Notes under the pieces: generated by a model
What the model was told of the DNA's origin: nothing
The model's input: only the letters and a program-made list of their open reading frames with translations
Database searches by the model: none
Shown here: positions 1,564 to 63,948 of the stretch, piece by piece
Numbering within the stretch: position 1 is the stretch's first letter
Layout of the letters: each line of letters starts with the position of its first letter
Assembly (NCBI GenBank): GCA_002269645.1
Contig: NIVC01000301.1
Location: forward strand, 604,460-668,459
Reading direction: 5' to 3'
DNA length: 64,000 bases
Origin: Macrostomum lignano
Lineage: Eukaryota
Position numbers and translations under genes: made by a program

Positions 1564-4500
1564 TCACCTGCCCCTGCCACCGCCGCCTTTCCGCTTGCCG
1601 CCCTTCCGGTTCGTCAGCTTGTTCCGCTCGCGAGTTATGCGCGCCTTCACAATCTGCTCCACGCTTTTGCGCTCCGACTGCTGCTGCCCACCTTTCTTTC
1701 CTGGGCGGCCGCCTGGCGCCGCCGCTGCTGCTGCCGCCGCGGCCGCTGTAGGACCGTGCCGCTTACGCTGCAGACCCAGGACGCGCATGCCGCCACGGCC
1801 ACCGCCGCCTCCCCGACCTTCTCCGTCGCTGCCGGCGCCGTCATCGTCAGCGCCGTCCTCGCCGCCGCCTCCTAGCGCCTCCGCATCGCCGCCGCCGATA
1901 TCGGGGTTCCGCTTGCGCCACTTGGCGTAGCGGTCGGTCTTGTAGGAGGCCGGCACCAGCTGGCCGCTCTCCGTCCGCACCATCAGCCGCTTGGCCGCCG
2001 ACGGGCCGCCGCCGGCCGCCGAATCTGCCGACACGAACTTCTTCCGCTTTCGGTCCCAGATCCGACCGCCGGCGCCCGGCGCCCGTCCGCCGCGGCGCAT
2101 CTGGTCGGTCTCATCAGCCAGGATGTCCATACTGTGCCGCTGCAGGTCCTGCGCCAAGCCGCGCTCCGTCGCCGCCGTGGCCTCGTCGCGGGTGTACGGC
2201 ATGAAGAAGCCGCCGGCGCCGCTGGCTTTGATGTCGCCGCTGTCGGCGCCGTCTGCGTTGGATCCGGTTGCGACCGCCGCCGCCTCCCGTTTGCCTCCGC
2301 CACGCAGTGCGGCATCAAGCCAGCCGGCCGGCCGCTTCTGAGTCTTGGCCTGCAGATACAAAAATGCGATCAATACTACTCAAAACAGAAAGTAAGTAGT
2401 GTAGAAAAGATTGGAAATACTGATAAACACCGCGGCCCTCACCTTTTCAATGACTCGACGATTCTTTTGTCGGAATTTTTGCATCACCTCGGCAACAGCG
2501 GCCGGTGCGTTCTTCGTCTCGAACACCGTGGCCCGGGCTCGGTAAGCTCTGCGGGGCGGGCTCTGCTTGGTTAATAGTGCCGGACACTCACTCTGACACT
2601 GACGGACACTCACCCAGACACTGGCCGGACACTCGCCATGACACTGACGGACACCAACCCAGACACTGGCCGGACACTAACCCAGACACTGGCCGGACAC
2701 TCACCCAGACACTGGCCGGACACTAACCCAGACACTGACGGACACTAACCCAGACACTGGCCGGACACTCACCCAGACACTGGCCGGACACTCACCCAGA
2801 CACTGGCCGGAAACTCACCCAGACACTGGCCGGACACTAACCCAGACACTGGCCGGACACTCACCCAGACACTGGCCGGAAACTCACCCAGACACTGGCC
2901 GGACACTCACCCCGACACCGTTCTGAAAGCCCGCAGCTCACCTGATCTGCTTAAGCACATCATCCTTGGCGCTGGTTAGCTCCGCAAACATCGGGTGCGG
3001 CTGCAGGTCGAGCTGGCCGGTCCGTCGGGCCTCCTTGCACTTGGCCACCGCCTGCCGGCTGGCGCCCGGCCTTGACCGGACATAGTGCTCCATGGCGCGC
3101 TTGGCGCAATCCAGCTGGGCGCGCAAATCGGCGCTGATGTCGTGTCGATGCCGGCACCAATCAGCGAATTCTTCCACGGCGGCGGCGGGCACGCAGCCGA
3201 CCAGGTCGCCGGGTTCGTCCGGCTGAATCGGCGGTTCGCCCGGCGCCGCGCGGAGGTAGCGAAGGCGCCTGGCGCCGAGGAACAACTCAAGGTCGAACAG
3301 GTAGGCCAGCTCGTCTGGCGCCAGCAGCGACACGGCGCGGCCCGGCCGGCCGGCTCGAGCAACCCGGCCAACCCGGTGGACGAAGAGCTTCTCCCTGGGC
3401 GGGAAGTGAAAATTCACGACGTTGTTGAGGCGCGGCAGGTCGAGGCCGCGGGCGGCCAGGTCGGTGGTGACAAGGACGTGCCGCTCGCCGCACCGGAAGT
3501 TGGCAGCGTGAATCCGACGGGCCGCCGGGTCCAGGGAGGAGTACAGGTAGGTCACCGAGATGCTGGCGTCCTGGGATAGCACCTGGGGGGTGCGGGGTGT
3601 TGAGCTGGTTCTTGAGCACTTTTATCATAGGCAAATGTGAGACGAAATTGATCAATAAAAAGCCTGAGAGATCCTTGCTAATTGCCAGCACATTAAAAAT
3701 CCCAGATCGCGAACCTGATATAGCCACTCCACGTGGTGCTTAGTGGCCACGAACACAATGGTGAGCTCCTGGCCCTTCAGCGCCGTGTGCAGCAGGTGCA
3801 GCAGCACCGGCAGTTTGTCTTCGTCGCGGCACAGCAGGAAGCTGGCGGTCAGCTGGTCGGACAGCTTGGCGTCCAGGTCCAGACGGACCAGCAGGGGGTC
3901 GGACAGGCCGGCCCTGGCGAACTCGGCCACCGACTGCGGCAGGGTGGCGCTGAACAGCAGCGTCTGGCGCTGGGTTGGCAGCCGGCTGAGCAGCAGCTGC
4001 AGCTGCTCCTGGAAGCCCAGCTCGAATAGGCGGTCGCATTCGTCCAGCACCAGGATCTCCACCTTGCTCAGCCTGCGGTCGGGCGGGAGCGGGATTTGAG
4101 TTGGGACTTGCAGTGGGATTCCTACCTTAGGGATTGGGACTCTCACCATAGGGATTGTGATTCTTACCTTAGGGATTGGGATTCTCACCATAGGGATTGG
4201 GATTCTTACCTTAGGGATTGGGATTCTTACCTTAGGGATTGGGATTCTTACCATAGGGATTGGGATTCTTACCTTAGGGATTGGGATTCTTTCCTTAGGG
4301 ATTGGGATTCTCACCAAAGGGATTGGGATTCTTACCTTAGGGATTGGGATTCTTACCCGATGGATTGGGATTCTTACCCGATGGATTGGGATTCTCACCA
4401 TAAGAATTGGGATTCTTACCATAGGGATTAGGATTCTACAATAGGGTTTGGGATTCTTAACTTAGGGATCAAGATTCTACAATAGGGATTGGGATTCTCC

Positions 4501-5286
4501 CCTTAGAGATAGGGATTGTTACTATAGGCATTAGGATTCTTACCTTAGGGATTGGGATTCTCACCATAAGAATTGGGATTCTTACCATAGGGATTAGGAT
4601 TCTACAATAAGGTTTGGGATTCTTAACTTAGGGATCAAGATTCTACAATAGGGATTGGGATTCTCCCCTTAGAGATTGGGATTCTTACCTTAGGGATTGG
4701 GATTCTTACCATAGGAGTTGGGATTCCTAAATTACTTTAGACATAAACAAAACCTGAGCAGGTCTCACTTGGCGTCCATCTCAGTGAGCAGGTGCAGCAG
4801 CCGGCCCGGACAGGCCACAACAATGTCCGGATTGCTGTGCAGGGCGCTGAACTGCCGCTCCATGCTGTCGCCGCCCAGCACCAGAGCCACGGTGAGGTCG
4901 GTGAAGCGGCCCAGGGCCCGGCAGAAGTCCAGAGTCTGCAGCGCGAGCTCCCGGGTCGGGCTGAGCACCAGAGCTCGGGCGCCGTTGCACTGGTGAGCCC
5001 GCAGGCGCTCCAGCAGCGGCACCAGGAAGGCGGCGGTCTTGCCAGAGCCGGTGCGCGCCATGGCGACGACATCCCTGCCGGCCAGGATGTGCGGCATGGT
5101 CTTGCGCTGGATCGGGGTGGGCACCCGGTAGCCTTTGCGCACGATGCCCTTGTACACTGGCGCCGACAGGCCCAGCGACTGGAAGCCACCGGACTTCCGC
5201 TGCTTCCGATTCCGGCTGGCGATGGCCGAGCGGGACTCCGCCCGCTCCGCCGACAAGGCGGCGTCCTCAACGACTGCCGGGGTCGA
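1564..5286 (-). CDS. DDX54: ATP-dependent RNA helicase DDX54/DBP10 (5 coding exons; start codon unresolved)
   Basis: Exons 5286-4769, 4072-3715, 3582-2942, 2548-2443 and 2349-1564 join in frame via GT-AG introns (2409 nt). Motifs: Q motif (SGGFQSLGL...[11 protein letters not shown]), [17 protein letters not shown], motif [32 protein letters not shown], and the DBP10-type C-terminus (WDRKRKKFV...[20 protein letters not shown]). Candidate AATAAA at 1173-1168. Confidence 0.93.
2579..2918. repeat. 23-bp intronic minisatellite (GGACACTCACCCAGACACTGGCC)
   Basis: Tandem periodicity inside DDX54 intron 2941-2549. Confidence 0.9.
4101..4716. repeat. 21-bp intronic minisatellite (TAGGGATTGGGATTCTTACCT)
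   Basis: Tandem periodicity inside DDX54 intron 4768-4073. Confidence 0.92.
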
Positions 5287-5324
5287 CTGCGGGCGGCGGT
5301 AAAGTGCATCGATAATCCAGCAGG

Positions 5325-5785
5325 GAGTTGGGGTAATCCGGTAGTGGGTTGGAGTAATCAAGTGGGTGGGTTGGGGTAATCCGGTAGGGGTTTGGGTAAT
5401 CCGCAAGGGGGTTGGGGTAATCTAGTGGGTGGGTTGGGGTAATCCGGTAGAGGGTTGGAGTAATCCGGTAGAGGGTTGGGGTAATCCGGTAGGGGGTTGG
5501 GGTAATCCGGTAGGGGGTTGGGGTAATCCGGTAGGGTTTTGGGGTAATCCGGAAGGGGGTTGGGGTAATCCGGTAGGGGGTTGGGGTAATCCGGTAGGGG
5601 GTTGGGGTAATCCGGTAGGGGGTTGGGGTAATCTGGTAGGGGGTTGGGGTAATCCGGTAGGGGGTTGGGGTAATCTGGTAGGGGGTTGGGGTAATCCGGT
5701 AGGGGGTTGGGGTAATCCGGTAGGGGGTTGGGGTAATCCGGTAGGGTTTTGGGGTAATCCGGCAGGGGGTTGGGGTAATCCGGAA
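5325..5785. repeat. 21-bp G-rich minisatellite (GGGGTAATCCGGTAGGGGGTT)
   Basis: Tandem periodicity just upstream of the first DDX54 coding acceptor. Confidence 0.92.
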
Positions 5786-6136
5786 GAGATTGAGAATTGG
5801 GGCACTAGGAACAATCCTTATGGCACGCAAGACCATCAGTGGTTAATGAAACCACTAAAGGATTAAGACAGCAATAAAAAGTCCAATTAAAGCAGCAAAC
5901 AGCTGACTAAACAGCAACGGTAACTCTTGAATAAGACCTAAGATTCACGGGTTTATTGAATTACTCGCAAAGCATACATTAGTACAAAAATAGACCAAGT
6001 AAAAATGCAGCTGCGCTTATAAATTGAAGCGAAAAACAGACGAGCAAAAATGTAAATTGCAAAAGAAACAAAAATGCAGGGGGGCTGACAGACCCCCTTA
6101 AAAATAATATAAATACAGATAGAGAGCGGCAGGTGG

Positions 6137-8118
6137 TCACGTGAACAGATCGTCAAACAGACGGTCAGCCTGGGAGGCGCTGTCGCCAGCATTAGAGGCC
6201 TGCCCCTGAAATCCGACACGACCTCCCCGACCGGTGGACTTCGCCTTCCGCCGCGACTCGCCGATTCCGTCATTGGCGTCGTCCTCGGCCTCCAGCAAGT
6301 CGAAGACGCTGCCGTGGCCGCCGCCGTCGCTGCCACTGCCGGCAATCTTTCTGGTGTCTTCGGTGCTGACGGAGCCGCCGCTGATGCCGCCGCCGCTGTC
6401 GCGGGCAACAAGCCGAGTGATGAGCGGCGATCTGGCGGCCAACGAGCCCGACGCCTGCTGGCTGACCGACCGAGCAGCAGCCGACTTGGCAACGAAGCGC
6501 TTGAAGTTCGGAACCACCCGGCCGCGCCACACGGCCTGGTTGGGCCCGGCGGGGGAGGCGGCGGGCTGCGGCGTCAGCGGCTTCGGCTTGGCGGAGATCA
6601 GCGACCGCTTGTTGACGCGCATGTAGCGCGGCTCCTCGGCGGCCAGGGGGAACTCGCTGAGGGTCAGCTCGGCGGCAGGTGGCTTGCGCAGCGACTGCTT
6701 GTCTGGCGGCGCTGGACCGATGTTTGTCTTCACCTCGGATAGTGGCGCCAGCAGTGGTGCCGGCTTTGGCGCCGGCTTCTCCGGAGAGTCGGCGGCTGTT
6801 TTGCTGAAGTACTGCAGCATGCTGGCCTGTCGCTTGGCCTGCGGAGCAGCGGCGTCCGACGGTTCGCCTTTGCGCCGCCGGCTGCCGGCCAGGCCGACCG
6901 ACTCGTTGGCTGCCGGCTTCTTCACCGGTGACGGCGACTGGCTGCACAGGCGCTTCGGTGCCGGCCTCGGGGCCGCCGGTTCCACAGCGGGGCTGCTGCC
7001 ATCGTCCGCGAATAGCGACAGAATGCCGCGGCCAGCGACTCCGCTTTCGGTTCCGCTTCCGGCTTCGTTTTTGACTTCCCCTTTGTCGCAGCCGTCGGCC
7101 GCACTGGCCGATGCCGACGGAGCTTCGGACAGTCGTGGCCGGCGCCTGTCCGGCTGGACGCATTCGGCGTCGACCTCGCTAGCAATAGCTATGGACGAAC
7201 GCTTGCGCGGTTGCTGCTGTGGCTGCTGCTGCTGCTCGGAGGCCTGGGTGGAGGTGTCCAGCAGGCTGGGGTCGCAGGGGGCGCACGGGTTGCAGACCAG
7301 GTCGGTGCGGCAGGCCAGCACGGCCCAGCAGATCTCCAGCTCCAGCACTGGCCGGCGGCTCGCAGACCTCAGGAGGCTGAAGACCCGCCCGGTCCAGTCC
7401 GAGTACGCGGGGCCGGCCGAGGCCGACCGGACAACCAGGACGGTGTCATCCGCCAAATCGGCCAGCTGCAGGCCGACGGCGAGCAGCGCTGACTCCGAGT
7501 GGGCGGCCAAGGCGACTCCTCCGGCCGCCTGGACGATGTCGCCGAACCGGCCGAGGCCGTCCGGACGAAGGAAACAGCAGCGCCGGCCGGACAGCAGGCG
7601 GCGTCGCTTCGGCTGGGGTCCAAAGTCGACGCTGTCGGCCAGCGGGCCGGACAGCAGGGCGGCCTCGGACACGGCCGGCCGAAATCGCTCGGGAAGTGGG
7701 GGCGGTTGGCCGGCCTGGACAGCCGCGGCCAGGTGGGTGAGAAAGTCGGGCAGCACGGGAGCGGCCAGGTGCAGCAGGCCGAGCACCAGCTTGGCCGTCA
7801 CGGTCAGCCGCGGCATCACCAGCAGGTCGGCGCCGTCTCTGGCGTCGTCCACCACCCGGCCGCCGAGCCGCTGCAGCGTTGTGGTGGCCGTCTGCCGGCT
7901 GGCCTCGCTTAGCGCTGAGAAGCAGACTCGGAGGCCTTGGCGCCTGAGGCGGCAGACCGCGCCCAGGCTAGGGTCGGAGTCCCCGAATTCCAGCTGATCG
8001 CCCGGCCTGGCGGGGAAGGCGAATGCGGCGAAATCAATAACAGACAGACAGCCGGACAGACAGACAGACAGTCAGACAGACAGCCGGACAGACAGACAGA
8101 CAGTCAGACAGACAGCCG

Positions 8119-8162
<44 letters not shown>

Positions 8163-8195
8163 TACAGACAGACAGACAGACAGACAGACACCCGA

Positions 8196-8246
<51 letters not shown>

Positions 8247-8251
8247 CCCGA

Positions 8252-8302
<51 letters not shown>

Positions 8303-8324
8303 TACAGACAGACAGACACCCCGA

Positions 8325-8355
<31 letters not shown>

Positions 8356-8356
8356 T

Positions 8357-8403
<47 letters not shown>

Positions 8404-8571
8404 GCCGGACAGACAGCAGCTGTAACAGACAGACAGCCAGACAGACAGACAGACAGCCGGACAGACAGACAGACAGCCGGACAGACAGCAGCTGTGACAG
8501 ACAGACAGACAGACAGCCAGACAGGCAGGCAGACAGCCGGACAGACAGACAGCCGGACAGACAGACAGCCG

Positions 8572-8603
<32 letters not shown>

Positions 8604-8604
8604 T

Positions 8605-8643
<39 letters not shown>

Positions 8644-8980
8644 TCCAGACAGACAGACAGACAGCCGGACAGACAGCAGCTGTGACAGACCCATAAAACA
8701 GTTCACAGACTCACCGAACGGTGACCCCGGCGGGCCCGGCAGGCGCGGCATCGCAGCCGTTGACGCGGGTGCCGTACCGGGAGGCCAGGTCAGCCAGTAT
8801 GAGCAAGCCCGGCTCCGGGCCCGGCCGGAGCTCGGCGTGCACCCGGCTGACGGACTTGCAGTCCAGGTGCAGCTGCACTTTGCTCTTCAGGCGGCCGATA
8901 TGGGCCCGGCTGCCCGGCTGGTCCATGGGCGGCAGGTAGAGGCACCGGTCCGACTCCTGCAGTTCCAGGTACCACAGCAT
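6137..8980 (-). CDS. NBN: Nibrin / NBS1 (MRN complex subunit), 2 exons, about 711 aa
   Basis: Exons 8980-8715 and 8006-6137 join in frame (cg|gtgagt ... ccag|g). N-terminal FHA (IGR...SVSRVHA...DLASRYGTRVNG), tandem BRCT-like region (LQRLGGRVV...LLVMPRLTVTAKLVLGLL...PVLELEICWAVL), Mre11-binding-like VPNFKRF, and acidic C-terminal DRLFDDLFT resembling the ATM-binding tail. AATAAA at 5957-5952. Confidence 0.85.
8041..8690. repeat. (CAGA)n microsatellite with variants, filling the NBN intron
   Basis: Direct sequence. Confidence 0.95.
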
Positions 8981-9139
8981 GGCCGGTGGAATGCTGAAGA
9001 GTGCGGCAGGTCGCTTCAAGTTAGTGCGGAGGACTACCATTGGCTAGACCGATGGGCACAGCATCCGGGGATTAAAAGATGAAGGACGGGTGGCCGAATC
9101 AGATTGAAATATGCAGATTTTAGGGACAGGATCTATGTT

Positions 9140-9219
9140 TCTATCTACCTATTTATCCATCTATCATCAATCAATCAATCAATCTATCTATCTACCTACC
9201 TACCTATCTATCTATCTAC

Positions 9220-9250
<31 letters not shown>

Positions 9251-9299
9251 CCTACCTATCTATCTATCTACCTATCTATCTATCTATCTATCTATCTAC

Positions 9300-9338
<39 letters not shown>

Positions 9339-9359
9339 CCTACCTATCTATCTATCTAC

Positions 9360-9412
<53 letters not shown>

Positions 9413-9531
9413 ATCAATCTATCTATCTATCATCAATCTATCTATCTATCTATCTATCTATCTGTCTATCTATCTATCTATCTATCTACCTATCTATCTA
9501 TCTATCTATCTATATATCTATCTACCTATTG

Positions 9532-9568
<37 letters not shown>

Positions 9569-9580
9569 CCTATCTAATCG

Positions 9581-9643
<63 letters not shown>

Positions 9644-9700
9644 CATCTATCTATCTATCTACCTATCTATCCATCTATCTATCTATCATCAATCTATCCA
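9140..9700. repeat. (TATC)n microsatellite
   Basis: Direct sequence. Confidence 0.95.
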
Positions 9701-10094: not shown

Positions 10095-10565
10095 CGGGAT
10101 CTCATAGTCAAACTGGCATCCCATGATCAGACTGAGATCTCATGATCAGACTGGGATCTCATAGTCAGACTGGGATCTCATGGTCAGACTGGGATCTCAT
10201 GGTCAGACTGGGATCTCATAGTCAGACTGGGATCTCATAGTCAGACTGGGATCTCATAGTCAGACTGGGATCTCATAGTCAAACTGGGATCCCATGATCA
10301 GACTGAGATCTCATGGTCAGACTGGGATCTCATAGTCAGACTGGGATCTCATGGTCAGACTAGGATCTCATAGTCAGACTGGGATCTCATGGTCAGACTG
10401 GGATCTCATAGTCAGACTGGGATCTCATAGTCAGACTGGGATCTCATAGTCAGACTGGGATCTCATAGTCAGACTGGGATCTCATAGTCAAACTGGGATC
10501 TCATGGTCAGACTGGGATCTCATGGTCAGACTAGGATCTCATGATCATACTGGGATCTCATGGTG
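10095..10565. repeat. 20-bp minisatellite (GTCAGACTGGGATCTCATAG)
   Basis: Tandem periodicity. Confidence 0.92.
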
Positions 10566-10638: not shown

Positions 10639-13589
10639 CTACACCTGGGTGGTGAGCAGCCGCAGCAGGTGCTCCTCAATAGCCAGCTGGGCCTGCCGGG
10701 CCCCCTTCCTGGTGCACAGGGCGTAGGCGTTGAGCCGGTCGGCATTCTCAGCGTAGAGGTCCGCGCCCCAGCGCAGCAGCTTAGCCACGCAGTCGGAGTG
10801 GTTGTTGTAGGCGGAGTACATCAGGGCGGTGTTGTACAGCTCGTCGCTCTGATTCACATCGGCGCCGGCTCGCAGCAGGTGCTCAACAATGTCCGAATGG
10901 CCGTAGCAGGCAGCCAGCAGCAGGCCGCTCTCGCCATTGTCGGCTGTGAGGTTCAATGAGGCGCCTTTGTACAGCAGCAGCTCCACGGTTGGCGTCTGGC
11001 CGTTGGCGCAGGCCCAGAGCAGCGGGCTGAAGCCTTTTTGGTCCTGCTGGTCCAGGTCCAGGCCGGGCCGGTTCATGCGCTCCTGCGGGCACGGCGGGCT
11101 GGGCTGGCGCTAGGGGACTCCGAGTCTTTGAAGGGATTGTGAAGGGATAATTGAAGGGATTGTGAAGGGATAATTGAAGGTATTGTGAAGGGATAATTGA
11201 AGGTATTGTGAAGGGATATTTGAAGGGATTGGGAAGGGATATCTGAAGGGATTGGGAAGGGATATTTGAAGGGATTGGGAAGGGATATTTGAAGGGATTA
11301 TGGAGGGATAATTGAAGGGATTGCGAAGGGATAACTGGTGGATTGGAAAGGGATAACTAAAGGGATTGCAAAGGGATAACTGGTGGATTGCGAAGGGATA
11401 ACTGGTGGATTGGGAAGGGATAATTAAAAGGATTGTGGAGGGATTGTGAAGGGATAATTGAAGGTATTGTGAAGGGATAATTGAAGGTATTGTGAAGGGA
11501 TAATTGAAGGTATTGTGAAGGTGCTCCAATGGTGCTCCGCGCGTACAACGTGCCTGAGCAGCTGATCTCCGCCGTCATGGCGATGTACCGTGATACGACA
11601 GCTGCTGTGACAACACCGGACGGCCTATCGGACTCCTTTGAGACATCCTCCGGAGTGCTTCAGGGAGATACGCTGGCGCCGTTTCTGTTCGTCCTGGTGC
11701 TTGACTGGGTGCTGCGGACTGCTCTTCCTACCGACGACGACGGTTTTCTGCTGCAGCGACGCGTGGGTCGACGTCAACCGGAGAAGCGGCTCAGCGTGCT
11801 TGGCTACGCCGACGACCTCGCCCTGCTGTCCTCGACCGTCGAGGGCGCCCAACGGCAGCTGGACAGGCTGGTTGCCGTTGCGGCGAGTGTCGGCCTGGTG
11901 GTCAACACGCAGAAGACCGTTGTGCTCTGCGTGCCGGACGACATCGAGGCTGCAATATTTTGCCGAGGCGCTGACGGGCAGGCGACCGAACTCCCGCGAT
12001 GTCAGCAGTTCGTCTACCTCGGCGGTCTAGTTCCAGACGCTCGCGAGGACCTGCGACGCCGCCGCGGGCTTGCCTGGGCTGCCTTTCGTTCTGTGAGGGC
12101 AGTCCTGCAGTCCGAGGCCCTACCGGACCGCCAGAGGGCGGCGCTGTTCCAGGCGGTAATCGAGACCGTCCTGCTGTACAACGCCGAGACCTGGACGCTG
12201 ACGGACTCACTCGAACAGCAAGTCGATGCGGCGCACGCTGGTCTGCTGCGCGCCGCCTTCAACATCGGCGTCGAGCGAGTCACCAACGCGGCACTCTATC
12301 GCCGCGCTGGCCTGCCACGTCCAAGTGATCTACTGCGCCGTCGGCGACTCCAGCTCGCAGGCCATCTCATCCGCGCCGAGTCGTACTGCCCACAGCCGGT
12401 GCAGGAGGTGCTGCTGCTCACGCTGCAGGCACCCTACCGGCGAGGTCAAGCGCGAACTCGGCGTTATGTCGACTGTCTGCTGGCTGACGCCGGCGCCCCG
12501 GACACTGCCGGTGGCGCGGCCTTTGTTCGCGCCCAAGCCATGAAGCGCGCCCTGTGACGCTGACTTTTACCATCATGACAGCGTATTTTGTTGTTGTTGT
12601 TGTTGAAGGGATAATTGAAGGTATTGTGAAGGGATAATTGAAGGGATTGTGAAGGGATAATTGAAGGTATTGTGAAGGGATAATTGAAGGTATTGTGAAG
12701 GGATAATTGAAGGTATTGTGAAGGGATAATTGAAGGTATTGTGAAGGGATAATTGAAGGTATTGTGAAGGGATAATTGAAGGTATTGTGAAGGGATAATT
12801 GAAGGTATTGTGAAGGGATAATTGAAGGTATTGTGAAGGGATAATTAAAGGTATTGTGAAGGGATAATTGAAGGGATTGTGAAGGATTGAAGGGATTGTG
12901 AAGAGATAATTGAAGGGATTGTGAAGGGATAATTGAAGGTATTGTGAAGGGATAATTGAAGGTATTGTGAAGGGATAATTGAAGGTATTGTGAAGGGATG
13001 AGGGAACAGACTGAGAATGAAACAATTGAGCAGGTTGTGGAGAGAATAGTGGATCATTGTGGAGAAAAACGGAAGGGAAAGGTTGCGACAGGCCGCCAAA
13101 AAGGTTAAAAATAGACTCCTCAAAGGCAGGCAGACTCACCTGCAGCAGGTTGAGCTCGCCCTGGGCAGCCAGCTGGTGAAGCGTGAGCTCCCTGACTTCA
13201 AACTGGGCGGTGGTCTGGATATTCCGGCGCTGCACGTTGGTCAGCACTGTGCTGATCTTGTTTGGCGACCGGCCCTTCTGCGGCGGCTGCTGCTGCTGCT
13301 GCGCCTGGGAAACTGGCTGATGAGGCAGTGGCGGAGTCTGCTGCGTCTGCAGCTGCTGCTGATGGTGCGGCGGTTGCATCATGCCGAAGTGAAACACGGG
13401 CCCCATTGATGCAGCAGGGGAGCTATGAGCTGCCTTTGTGCCACCGCCGCCACCGCCCATGAGCTGCTGCTGTTGAAGGCGGTGGGCAGCCGCTGCAGCC
13501 GCCATCTGATGCTGCTGCTGCTGCTGGTAGGCAGCTGAGATCGAGTGGTGCTGCGAGTGCGGCTGCTGCAACAGCACAGGATCAGGCAT
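10639..13589 (-). CDS. RFXANK: RFXANK/ANKRA2-family ankyrin repeat protein, 2 coding exons, about 297 aa
   Basis: Exons 13589-13140 and 11082-10639 (cag|gtgagt ... ccgcag|gag). SPNKISTVLTNVQRRN...LTLHQLAAQGELNLLQ followed by ankyrin repeats (GFSPLLWACANG, GESGLLLAACYG, YNTALMYSAYNNH) and C-terminal IEEHLLRLL match the RFXANK/ANKRA2 family. The N-terminus is Q/H/A-rich. Invertebrates typically have one co-orthologue of RFXANK and ANKRA2, so the symbol is approximate. Confidence 0.85.
11128..13000. repeat. 23-bp minisatellite (TGAAGGGATAATTGAAGGTATTG) at 11128-11520 and 12606-13000, split by the LINE insertion
   Basis: The same unit lies on both sides of the retroelement. Confidence 0.92.
11521..12605 (+). 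mobile_element. 5'-truncated non-LTR retrotransposon (RTE-like LINE), C-terminal part of reverse transcriptase
   Basis: Uninterrupted ORF 11529-12557 with RT motifs GVLQGDTLAPFLF, YADD, GLVVNTQKT, FVYLG and ETVLLYNAETWTL. Short 3' UTR ending in a (TTG)n tail (to 12605). Flanks share AAGGGATAATTGAAGGTATTGTGAAG (11495-11520 and 12606-12631), a candidate TSD that is ambiguous because the target is a tandem array. Confidence 0.9.

Positions 13590-39704: not shown

Positions 39705-63948
<24,244 letters not shown>

Follow-up and report, generated by a model that had tools for sequence, protein, structure and literature searches.

On the minus strand of the window, the 64-kb stretch of the Macrostomum lignano genome that was analyzed, a gene for the DEAD-box helicase DDX54 was found with five coding exons. 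DDX54 is an essential, universally conserved helicase of ribosome biogenesis. The predicted product has profile matches to DEAD (PF00270; 1.1e-50), Helicase_C (PF00271; 5.6e-23), and DBP10CT (NUC160) (PF08147; 3.2e-15), and with the full-length protein as the query of a protein database, DDX54 was the best named match across animals. The protein is 100% identical to PAA86580.1 (BOX15_Mlig020098g2, partial). All of its introns are GT-AG, several of them are occupied by minisatellites, and its four donors match 4 to 6 of 7 consensus positions. Upstream on the same strand lie a gene for nibrin (NBN), identified by profile matches to FHA and NIBRIN_BRCT_II domains, and an ankyrin-repeat gene; a redoxin/peroxiredoxin-like gene lies downstream. 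The coordinates of these features are collected in Table 1.

Table 1. Features of the DDX54 locus in window coordinates (scaffold NIVC01000301.1 position = 604459 + window coordinate); a slash marks a splice boundary
Feature	Position	Strand	Remarks
DDX54 gene	5286-4769, 4072-3715, 3582-2942, 2548-2443, 2349-1564	minus	Five coding exons, stop codon included
DDX54 coding exon 1	4769..5286	minus	Phase 0; STPAVVED...EMDAK; GGFQ and Q motifs and motif I
DDX54 donors		minus	CAA/GTGAGA, CAG/GTTCGC, CAG/GTGAGC, AAG/GTGAGG
DDX54 exon 1 acceptor, ccgcccgcag	5287..5296	minus	AG 5288-5287; proposed spliced-leader trans-splice site; scaffold position 609745
Out-of-frame ATG	5307..5309	minus	21 nt upstream of the acceptor; opens an alternative-frame ORF through the rest of exon 1
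In-frame stop TAG	5422..5424	minus	Upstream limit of the exon 1 frame; no ATG between TAG and acceptor
21-bp tandem array	5313..5783	minus	Sense unit CCGGATTACCCCAACCCCCTA; 22.4 copies, 88% matches; most of the putative outron/intercistronic spacer
Candidate micro-exon	5832..5856	minus	AG 5856-5855, tggtttcattaaccactg, ATG 5836-5834, GT 5833-5832
AATAAA, NBN poly(A) signal	5952..5957	minus	Downstream of the NBN stop codon
NBN coding region	6137..8980	minus	ATG 8980-8978, stop 6139-6137; (ACAG)n array in one intron
Acceptor upstream of NBN, ctcttcag	8994..9001	minus	First exon base 8993; position 6292 in genomic copy L003
Ankyrin-repeat gene	13565-10639	minus	Upstream of NBN; 1719-4645 in genomic copy L003
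Reverse-transcriptase-like open frame	11508-12554	plus	349 codons, YADD motif; inside an intron of the ankyrin-repeat gene
Redoxin/peroxiredoxin-like gene	5' end ~150, remainder beyond window	minus	15095 in genomic copy L001, 15134 in L003
Voltage-gated cation channel exons	~54200-61000	plus	Interrupted by long (ACAG)n-type arrays
Repeat arrays	591-1073, 2579-2918, 4114-4726, 5313-5783, 8040-8676, 9131-9698, 10096-10561, 11128-11521		Many more up to 63 kb
Paralogous DDX54 sites	NIVC01000272.1, NIVC01001427.1		Two further genomic copies

Tandem arrays are a general feature of this DNA: minisatellites or microsatellites with periods of 4, 19, 21, 23, and 42 occur in nearly every intron and intergenic spacer, and their lengths differ among paralogous copies. 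They also interrupt the exons of a voltage-gated cation channel gene far from DDX54. The open frame with reverse-transcriptase likeness inside the ankyrin-repeat gene is probably a retroelement insertion.

Three genomic copies of DDX54 (L001, L002, and L003) are present in assembly GCA_002269645.1. L003 is the window copy, identical to the window at every base over 15,283 nt. The gene is 3468, 4495, and 3720 bp long in the three copies; in each, the 802-codon frame, the clean GT-AG introns, and all helicase domains are intact.

Exon 1 begins, as the initial annotation had it, directly behind an acceptor (ccgcccgcag/TCG, with ACC CCG following; first base, 5286) and in phase 0, and no ATG stands ahead of the Q motif; reading of the frame confirmed both points for the window copy and found the Q motif equally unpreceded by ATG in L001 and L002. 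The first in-frame methionine encoded in the genome lies in KTMPHIL, past the Q motif GYRVPTPIQ, again in all three copies. It is residue 65 if a methionine contributed by a spliced leader (SL) is counted as residue 1, and it falls inside the DEAD domain. The last seven bases of the acceptor, cccgcag, also end the acceptor of intron 3, and CCGCAG as a whole resembles the cis acceptors of the same gene while differing from [T/C]TNCAG, the top trans-splice acceptor motif in M. lignano (PMC8629364).

That the missing start codon marks a pseudogene, or an artefact of assembly or annotation, is extremely improbable. Earlier UniProt models of the locus based on the ML2 assembly are indeed faulty, with frameshifts and fusions of NBN to DDX54, but the frame, the introns, and the helicase domains are intact in three independent genomic copies that share the same 5' structure. 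We excluded this explanation because there are three intact copies.

Comparison with orthologues indicated how much of the N terminus is absent from the exon. In the alignment, 32 residues precede GGFQ in M. lignano exon 1, compared with 29 to 32, methionine included, in Clonorchis, Heterobilharzia, Taenia, Rodentolepis, and Anoplocephala, and 32 to 34 in several other animals. Both the length of this segment and its NRK-KKSGGFQ motif are conserved across animals, and the methionine of the orthologues is aligned with the residue that opens the M. lignano exon. Since only the methionine is missing, a longer upstream coding exon is unnecessary.

M. lignano possesses a single 35-nt SL, CGGTCTCTTACTGCGAAGACTCAATTTATTGCATG, which ends in ATG and is followed by GTAAG in the 109-bp SL RNA gene; SL trans-splicing affects about 30% of genes, and operons contain about 15% (PMC8629364). 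The general expectation that a flatworm SL exon ends in AUG thus proved correct for this host. An Rfam scan of the whole 64-kb window detected no SL RNA or other RNA family, and the 3' half of the SL has no match in the window at up to three mismatches; the SL gene is located elsewhere in the genome.

Joining of the SL to exon 1 in silico gives ...TTGCATG/TCGACC, in which the SL AUG occupies nucleotides 33 to 35, is the first AUG, and opens in frame an ORF of 803 codons. The prediction that trans-splicing at 5286 would yield M-STPAVVED in frame is therefore supported by the in silico junction, and also by the 5'-partial gene models described below and by the N-terminal length of the orthologues. 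Taken together, these indirect lines of sequence evidence support well that the start codon of DDX54 is most likely supplied by the trans-spliced leader RNA.

The context of the SL AUG on this mRNA is weak, with U at -3 and U at +4. Later AUGs fall at nucleotides 225 (in frame, Met65), 250 (out of frame), and 261 of the joined mRNA, and Met65 has a better context (aagaccATGc). Initiation at Met65 or at a non-AUG codon, which would give a truncated or N-terminally different helicase, could draw on this difference and on the apparent bypassing of the SL AUG on the NBN mRNA (see below). Against it, the 32 upstream residues keep their length and the NRK-KKSGGFQ motif throughout the animals compared, and a start at Met65 would remove the GGFQ and Q motifs together with the first residues of the DEAD domain. 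These elements are needed for ATP binding in DEAD-box proteins. As the principal source of the protein, such a start is quite unlikely. Because its context is weak and the same AUG would be skipped on NBN, initiation at the SL AUG is perhaps inefficient, and its use on DDX54 may be partial, with some initiation at Met65.

The public gene models agree with trans-splicing at the exon 1 acceptor. For the Mlig_3_7 annotation, SL-trimmed reads were mapped, transcriptional units were "cut" at SL peaks by TBONE, and ORFs were called with TransDecoder (PMC5730564). The three NCBI proteins from the locus, PAA68056, PAA86580, and PAA85936 (Mlig020098 g1, g2, and g3), are all partial, lack methionine, and begin with STPAVV, STPAVV, and TPAVV, respectively. 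In two copies, the annotated coding sequence starts at the first base past the AG; in the window copy (g3), the start is shifted 3 nt downstream. A 5'-partial ORF in TransDecoder starts no more than 2 bases from the 5' end of the transcript; therefore, the annotated DDX54 transcripts begin at the acceptor, the outcome expected of a TBONE cut at an SL peak. An older ML2-based model starts with QSTPAVV, likewise without methionine. Two other ML2-based UniProt entries, A0A1I8IU19 and A0A1I8FG00, fuse NBN and DDX54 through the 21-bp array with frameshifted stretches; these fusions are prediction or assembly artefacts and not real fusion proteins.

The label "partial" in the M. lignano annotation denotes an ORF that is open to the 5' end of its transcript, and SL sites are indicated only by starts located at an acceptor. 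The coding sequences of the downstream redoxin/peroxiredoxin-like gene are also 5'-partial, with starts that do not lie at an AG. Searches of the protein database with N-terminal DDX54 queries of 293 and 111 aa returned no M. lignano transcript fragments starting with M-STPAVV; the best matches of these queries came from cestodes and other animals, none exceeding 72% identity, and M. lignano entries were matched by the full-length query only. The protein cluster of DDX54 contains NCBI and UniRef members and no transcript assemblies, and the gene identifier Mlig020098 is absent from the accessible supplements of the M. lignano papers and in full-text search.

Most of the spacer between NBN and DDX54 consists of the 21-bp array. 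Three elements of this spacer had been described in the initial annotation and were found where expected: the G-rich array ahead of exon 1, which is G-rich on the plus strand and 49% C on the sense strand; the AATAAA downstream of NBN; and, about 100 nt past this signal, cctttag/tggtttcattaaccactgATG/gtcttg, a candidate micro-exon with an ATG and a weak donor. The array contains neither GT nor ATG on the sense strand, and it comprises 27, 13, and 22 units in the three genomic copies. On the plus strand it is rich in GGGGGTTGGGG, and G-quadruplexes might form there. We also considered the array as coding sequence, given that it is open in three frames within units and that A0A1I8IU19 reads through it. 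This was rejected because the unit number varies, the exon 1 frame meets a stop without an ATG in each copy, and the orthologues lack such a segment.

The DDX54 acceptor lies 665 nt beyond the NBN AATAAA, or 202 nt beyond it after subtraction of the array, and the latter value is the same in all three copies. The variable unit number beside a constant nonrepeat distance indicates that the array is a fast-evolving spacer. It has been reported that the spacers of M. lignano operons are inflated by repeats and that repeat-adjusted distances have their maximum frequency near 100 bp, 1 kb being the threshold applied (PMC8629364), and the adjusted distance found here thus lies within the published operon range. 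With both genes on the same strand, 202 nt of adjusted distance between them, and the inferred trans-splicing of DDX54, NBN is likely the upstream gene of an operon that includes DDX54.

A conventional first exon carrying the ATG was sought in this spacer. Only four sense-strand ATGs occur between the NBN stop codon and the DDX54 acceptor, and only three combinations of ATG and GT are in phase: ATG5979...cga/GTAATT, ATG5836/GTCTTG, and ATG5836...att/GTTCCT. GT[G/A]AG, present at about 65% of M. lignano donor regions (PMC8629364), is missing from all three of these donors, and the 850-nt intergenic region is free of GTRAG donors in every genomic copy. This absence was rejected as a statistical argument for an outron, the probability of finding none being about 0.09 to 0.33; a donor-poor spacer with a GT-free array fits an outron, but the absence of GTRAG alone is not significant.

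The first of the cis alternatives is a first exon or micro-exon ending in the ATG at 5836-5834 and joined to 5286 across a 546-nt intron that is mostly array. It would produce the same M-STPAVVED through the junction of ACCACTGATG with TCGACCCCGG, and we regard it as unlikely to be the main source of the start codon. The phase is correct, the ATG/GT is present in all three copies, the 5286 acceptor is cis-like, and weak donors are used in M. lignano, such as the CAG/GTTCGC of DDX54 intron 2. Against this stands the donor itself, ATG/GTCTTG, which matches 2 of 7 consensus positions, the poorest of the three candidates, and lacks GT[G/A]AG. The exon is found in none of four gene models, all of which lack methionine, and as an internal exon it would need a further exon upstream. 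With the NBN poly(A) signal only about 100 nt upstream, a promoter would be required inside the NBN 3' UTR. Conservation of ATG/GTCTTG among the three copies was considered as a test and is uninformative, since the flanking sequences share about 99% identity. The earlier suggestion that a micro-exon route may coexist with trans-splicing is the one part of the initial proposal that was not supported, given the worst donor of the candidates and its absence from the gene models; a minor isoform of this kind is possible.

The second cis alternative has the best donor among the three in-phase options, with 4 of 7 consensus positions. Here, an exon within the NBN 3' UTR, with ATG 5979-5977 and the donor cga/GTAATT at 5964, would be spliced to exon 1 (predicted junction, GCTTTGCGA to TCGACCCC, also given by GCTTTGCGA joined to TCGACCCCGG) and would produce MYALR-STPAVV. 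It is very improbable: the exon is missing from all gene models, its additional residues have no counterpart in the orthologues, the NBN AATAAA would fall in an intron of DDX54, and transcription would have to start inside the NBN 3' UTR.

NBN itself bears a similar mark at its 5' end. The coding sequence of NBN in the window copy is 5'-partial and starts 1 nt past ctcttcag, which is probably a second SL site given this adjacency, and NBN appears to be trans-spliced at ctcttcag/C. On such an NBN mRNA, the SL AUG would stand in the +1 frame, 16 nt before the NBN ATG, and would open an overlapping ORF of 68 codons. The same leader AUG would consequently be skipped on NBN and used on DDX54. The coding sequence of the ankyrin-repeat gene is also 5'-partial and starts directly after tgttgcag, and both this acceptor and that of NBN fit the [T/C]TNCAG motif. 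Together with NBN and DDX54, the ankyrin-repeat gene may make up an operon of three genes. On the ankyrin-repeat gene the SL AUG would be in frame (M-QPHSQHH...), and the gene's own ATG follows 20 codons downstream, an arrangement that allows two N-terminal isoforms. In L001, the annotation of this gene begins only at a much later ATG (145 aa).

For leader-supplied initiation on DDX54, we envisage the following sequence of steps. A polycistronic pre-mRNA would carry DDX54, probably NBN, and perhaps the ankyrin-repeat gene too, and cleavage would take place at the poly(A) site of NBN. The 35-nt SL would then be attached to the acceptor at 5286, and the outron, with the 21-bp array and the out-of-frame ATG, would be discarded. 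The predicted junction joins ...ATTTATTGCATG to TCGACCCCGGCAG, or, as a 30-mer, CAATTTATTGCATG to TCGACCCCGGCAGTCG. In the resulting mRNA, the terminal AUG of the leader would directly precede TCG ACC CCG and, as the first AUG of the mature mRNA, would begin a reading frame of 803 codons behind a 5' UTR of 32 nt. We infer the SL junction at exactly 5286, initiation at the SL AUG, and membership in an operon from the features of the locus described above. As regards the history of the gene, we lean slightly toward a DDX54 start that depends wholly on trans-splicing in the three copies, with the acceptor lying at the position of the orthologues' methionine and the genomic start codon replaced by the leader AUG in evolution.

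Several consequences would follow. The locus is noteworthy in that an essential helicase has no genomic start codon in any of three copies, the acceptor coincides exactly with the ancestral start, and NBN would have to ignore the same AUG. Each of the three public M. lignano DDX54 proteins flagged as partial is complete once the leader AUG is added, which accounts for the flag, and if this situation is widespread, a considerable fraction of the "partial" proteins of this species is actually complete. In that case, conserved genes like DDX54 would need trans-splicing to complete their coding sequence, and this step could be a point of control. Whole-SL trimming deletes real start codons, which is a practical warning for the annotation of species that trans-splice. 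M. lignano is a transgenesis-ready flatworm, so SL AUG initiation is easy to test there, and DDX54 offers a clean case for measuring the efficiency of an SL AUG in weak context and its skipping on mRNAs like that of NBN.

The mechanism proposed here is already known, and no new one is revealed; the species and the gene are new. The 3'-terminal AUG of the SL of Schistosoma mansoni has been shown to serve as initiator methionine (Cheng, Cohen, Ndegwa & Davis 2006, J Biol Chem 281:733; PMC9851317), and it is in frame in 28% of trans-spliced transcripts, with more than 40 cDNAs that need it (PMC9851317, citing Cheng et al.). Within Macrostomum, Wiberg et al. (2023; PMC10468722), working on two other species, regarded the ATG at the end of the SL as a start codon and did not trim it, so that annotation would not suffer. 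In the searched text of PMC5730564 and PMC8629364, a start at the SL AUG is not discussed.

DDX54 resembles the operonic genes of M. lignano (Wudarski et al. 2017, PMC5730564; Ustyantsev & Berezikov 2021, PMC8629364) in having a same-strand neighbor, a start at an acceptor, and a repeat-inflated spacer whose adjusted length of 202 nt is below 1 kb, although its CCGCAG acceptor is unlike the top trans-splice motif of this species (PMC8629364). It is like the slORFs recovered with slORFfinder (PMC9851317) in that the predicted ORF exists only on the trans-spliced mRNA and has its start codon in the SL. However, the slORFs of that work use near-cognate NUG codons and are described from nematodes, Oikopleura, and trypanosomes, while the DDX54 start would be a canonical AUG that opens the main conserved ORF. 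Genes with an ATG-only first coding exon likewise have a phase 0 junction right after the ATG and would give the same protein, but they need an upstream promoter and a usable donor, and the sole such donor at DDX54 is very weak and occurs in no gene model. The closest likeness is to the Schistosoma mRNAs that start at the SL AUG, in which, as at DDX54, the acceptor lies directly at the ORF start, the AUG of the SL exon is in frame, and the mRNA has no usable AUG of its own. DDX54 differs from the Schistosoma case in its host, a free-living macrostomorph with a different 35-nt SL, in encoding an essential conserved helicase, and in its three paralogous copies; for Schistosoma, initiation at the SL AUG has been put to an experimental test, and for DDX54 of M. 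lignano it is predicted. Judged by the features that can be compared, DDX54 would belong with the SL-AUG-initiated mRNAs of Schistosoma.
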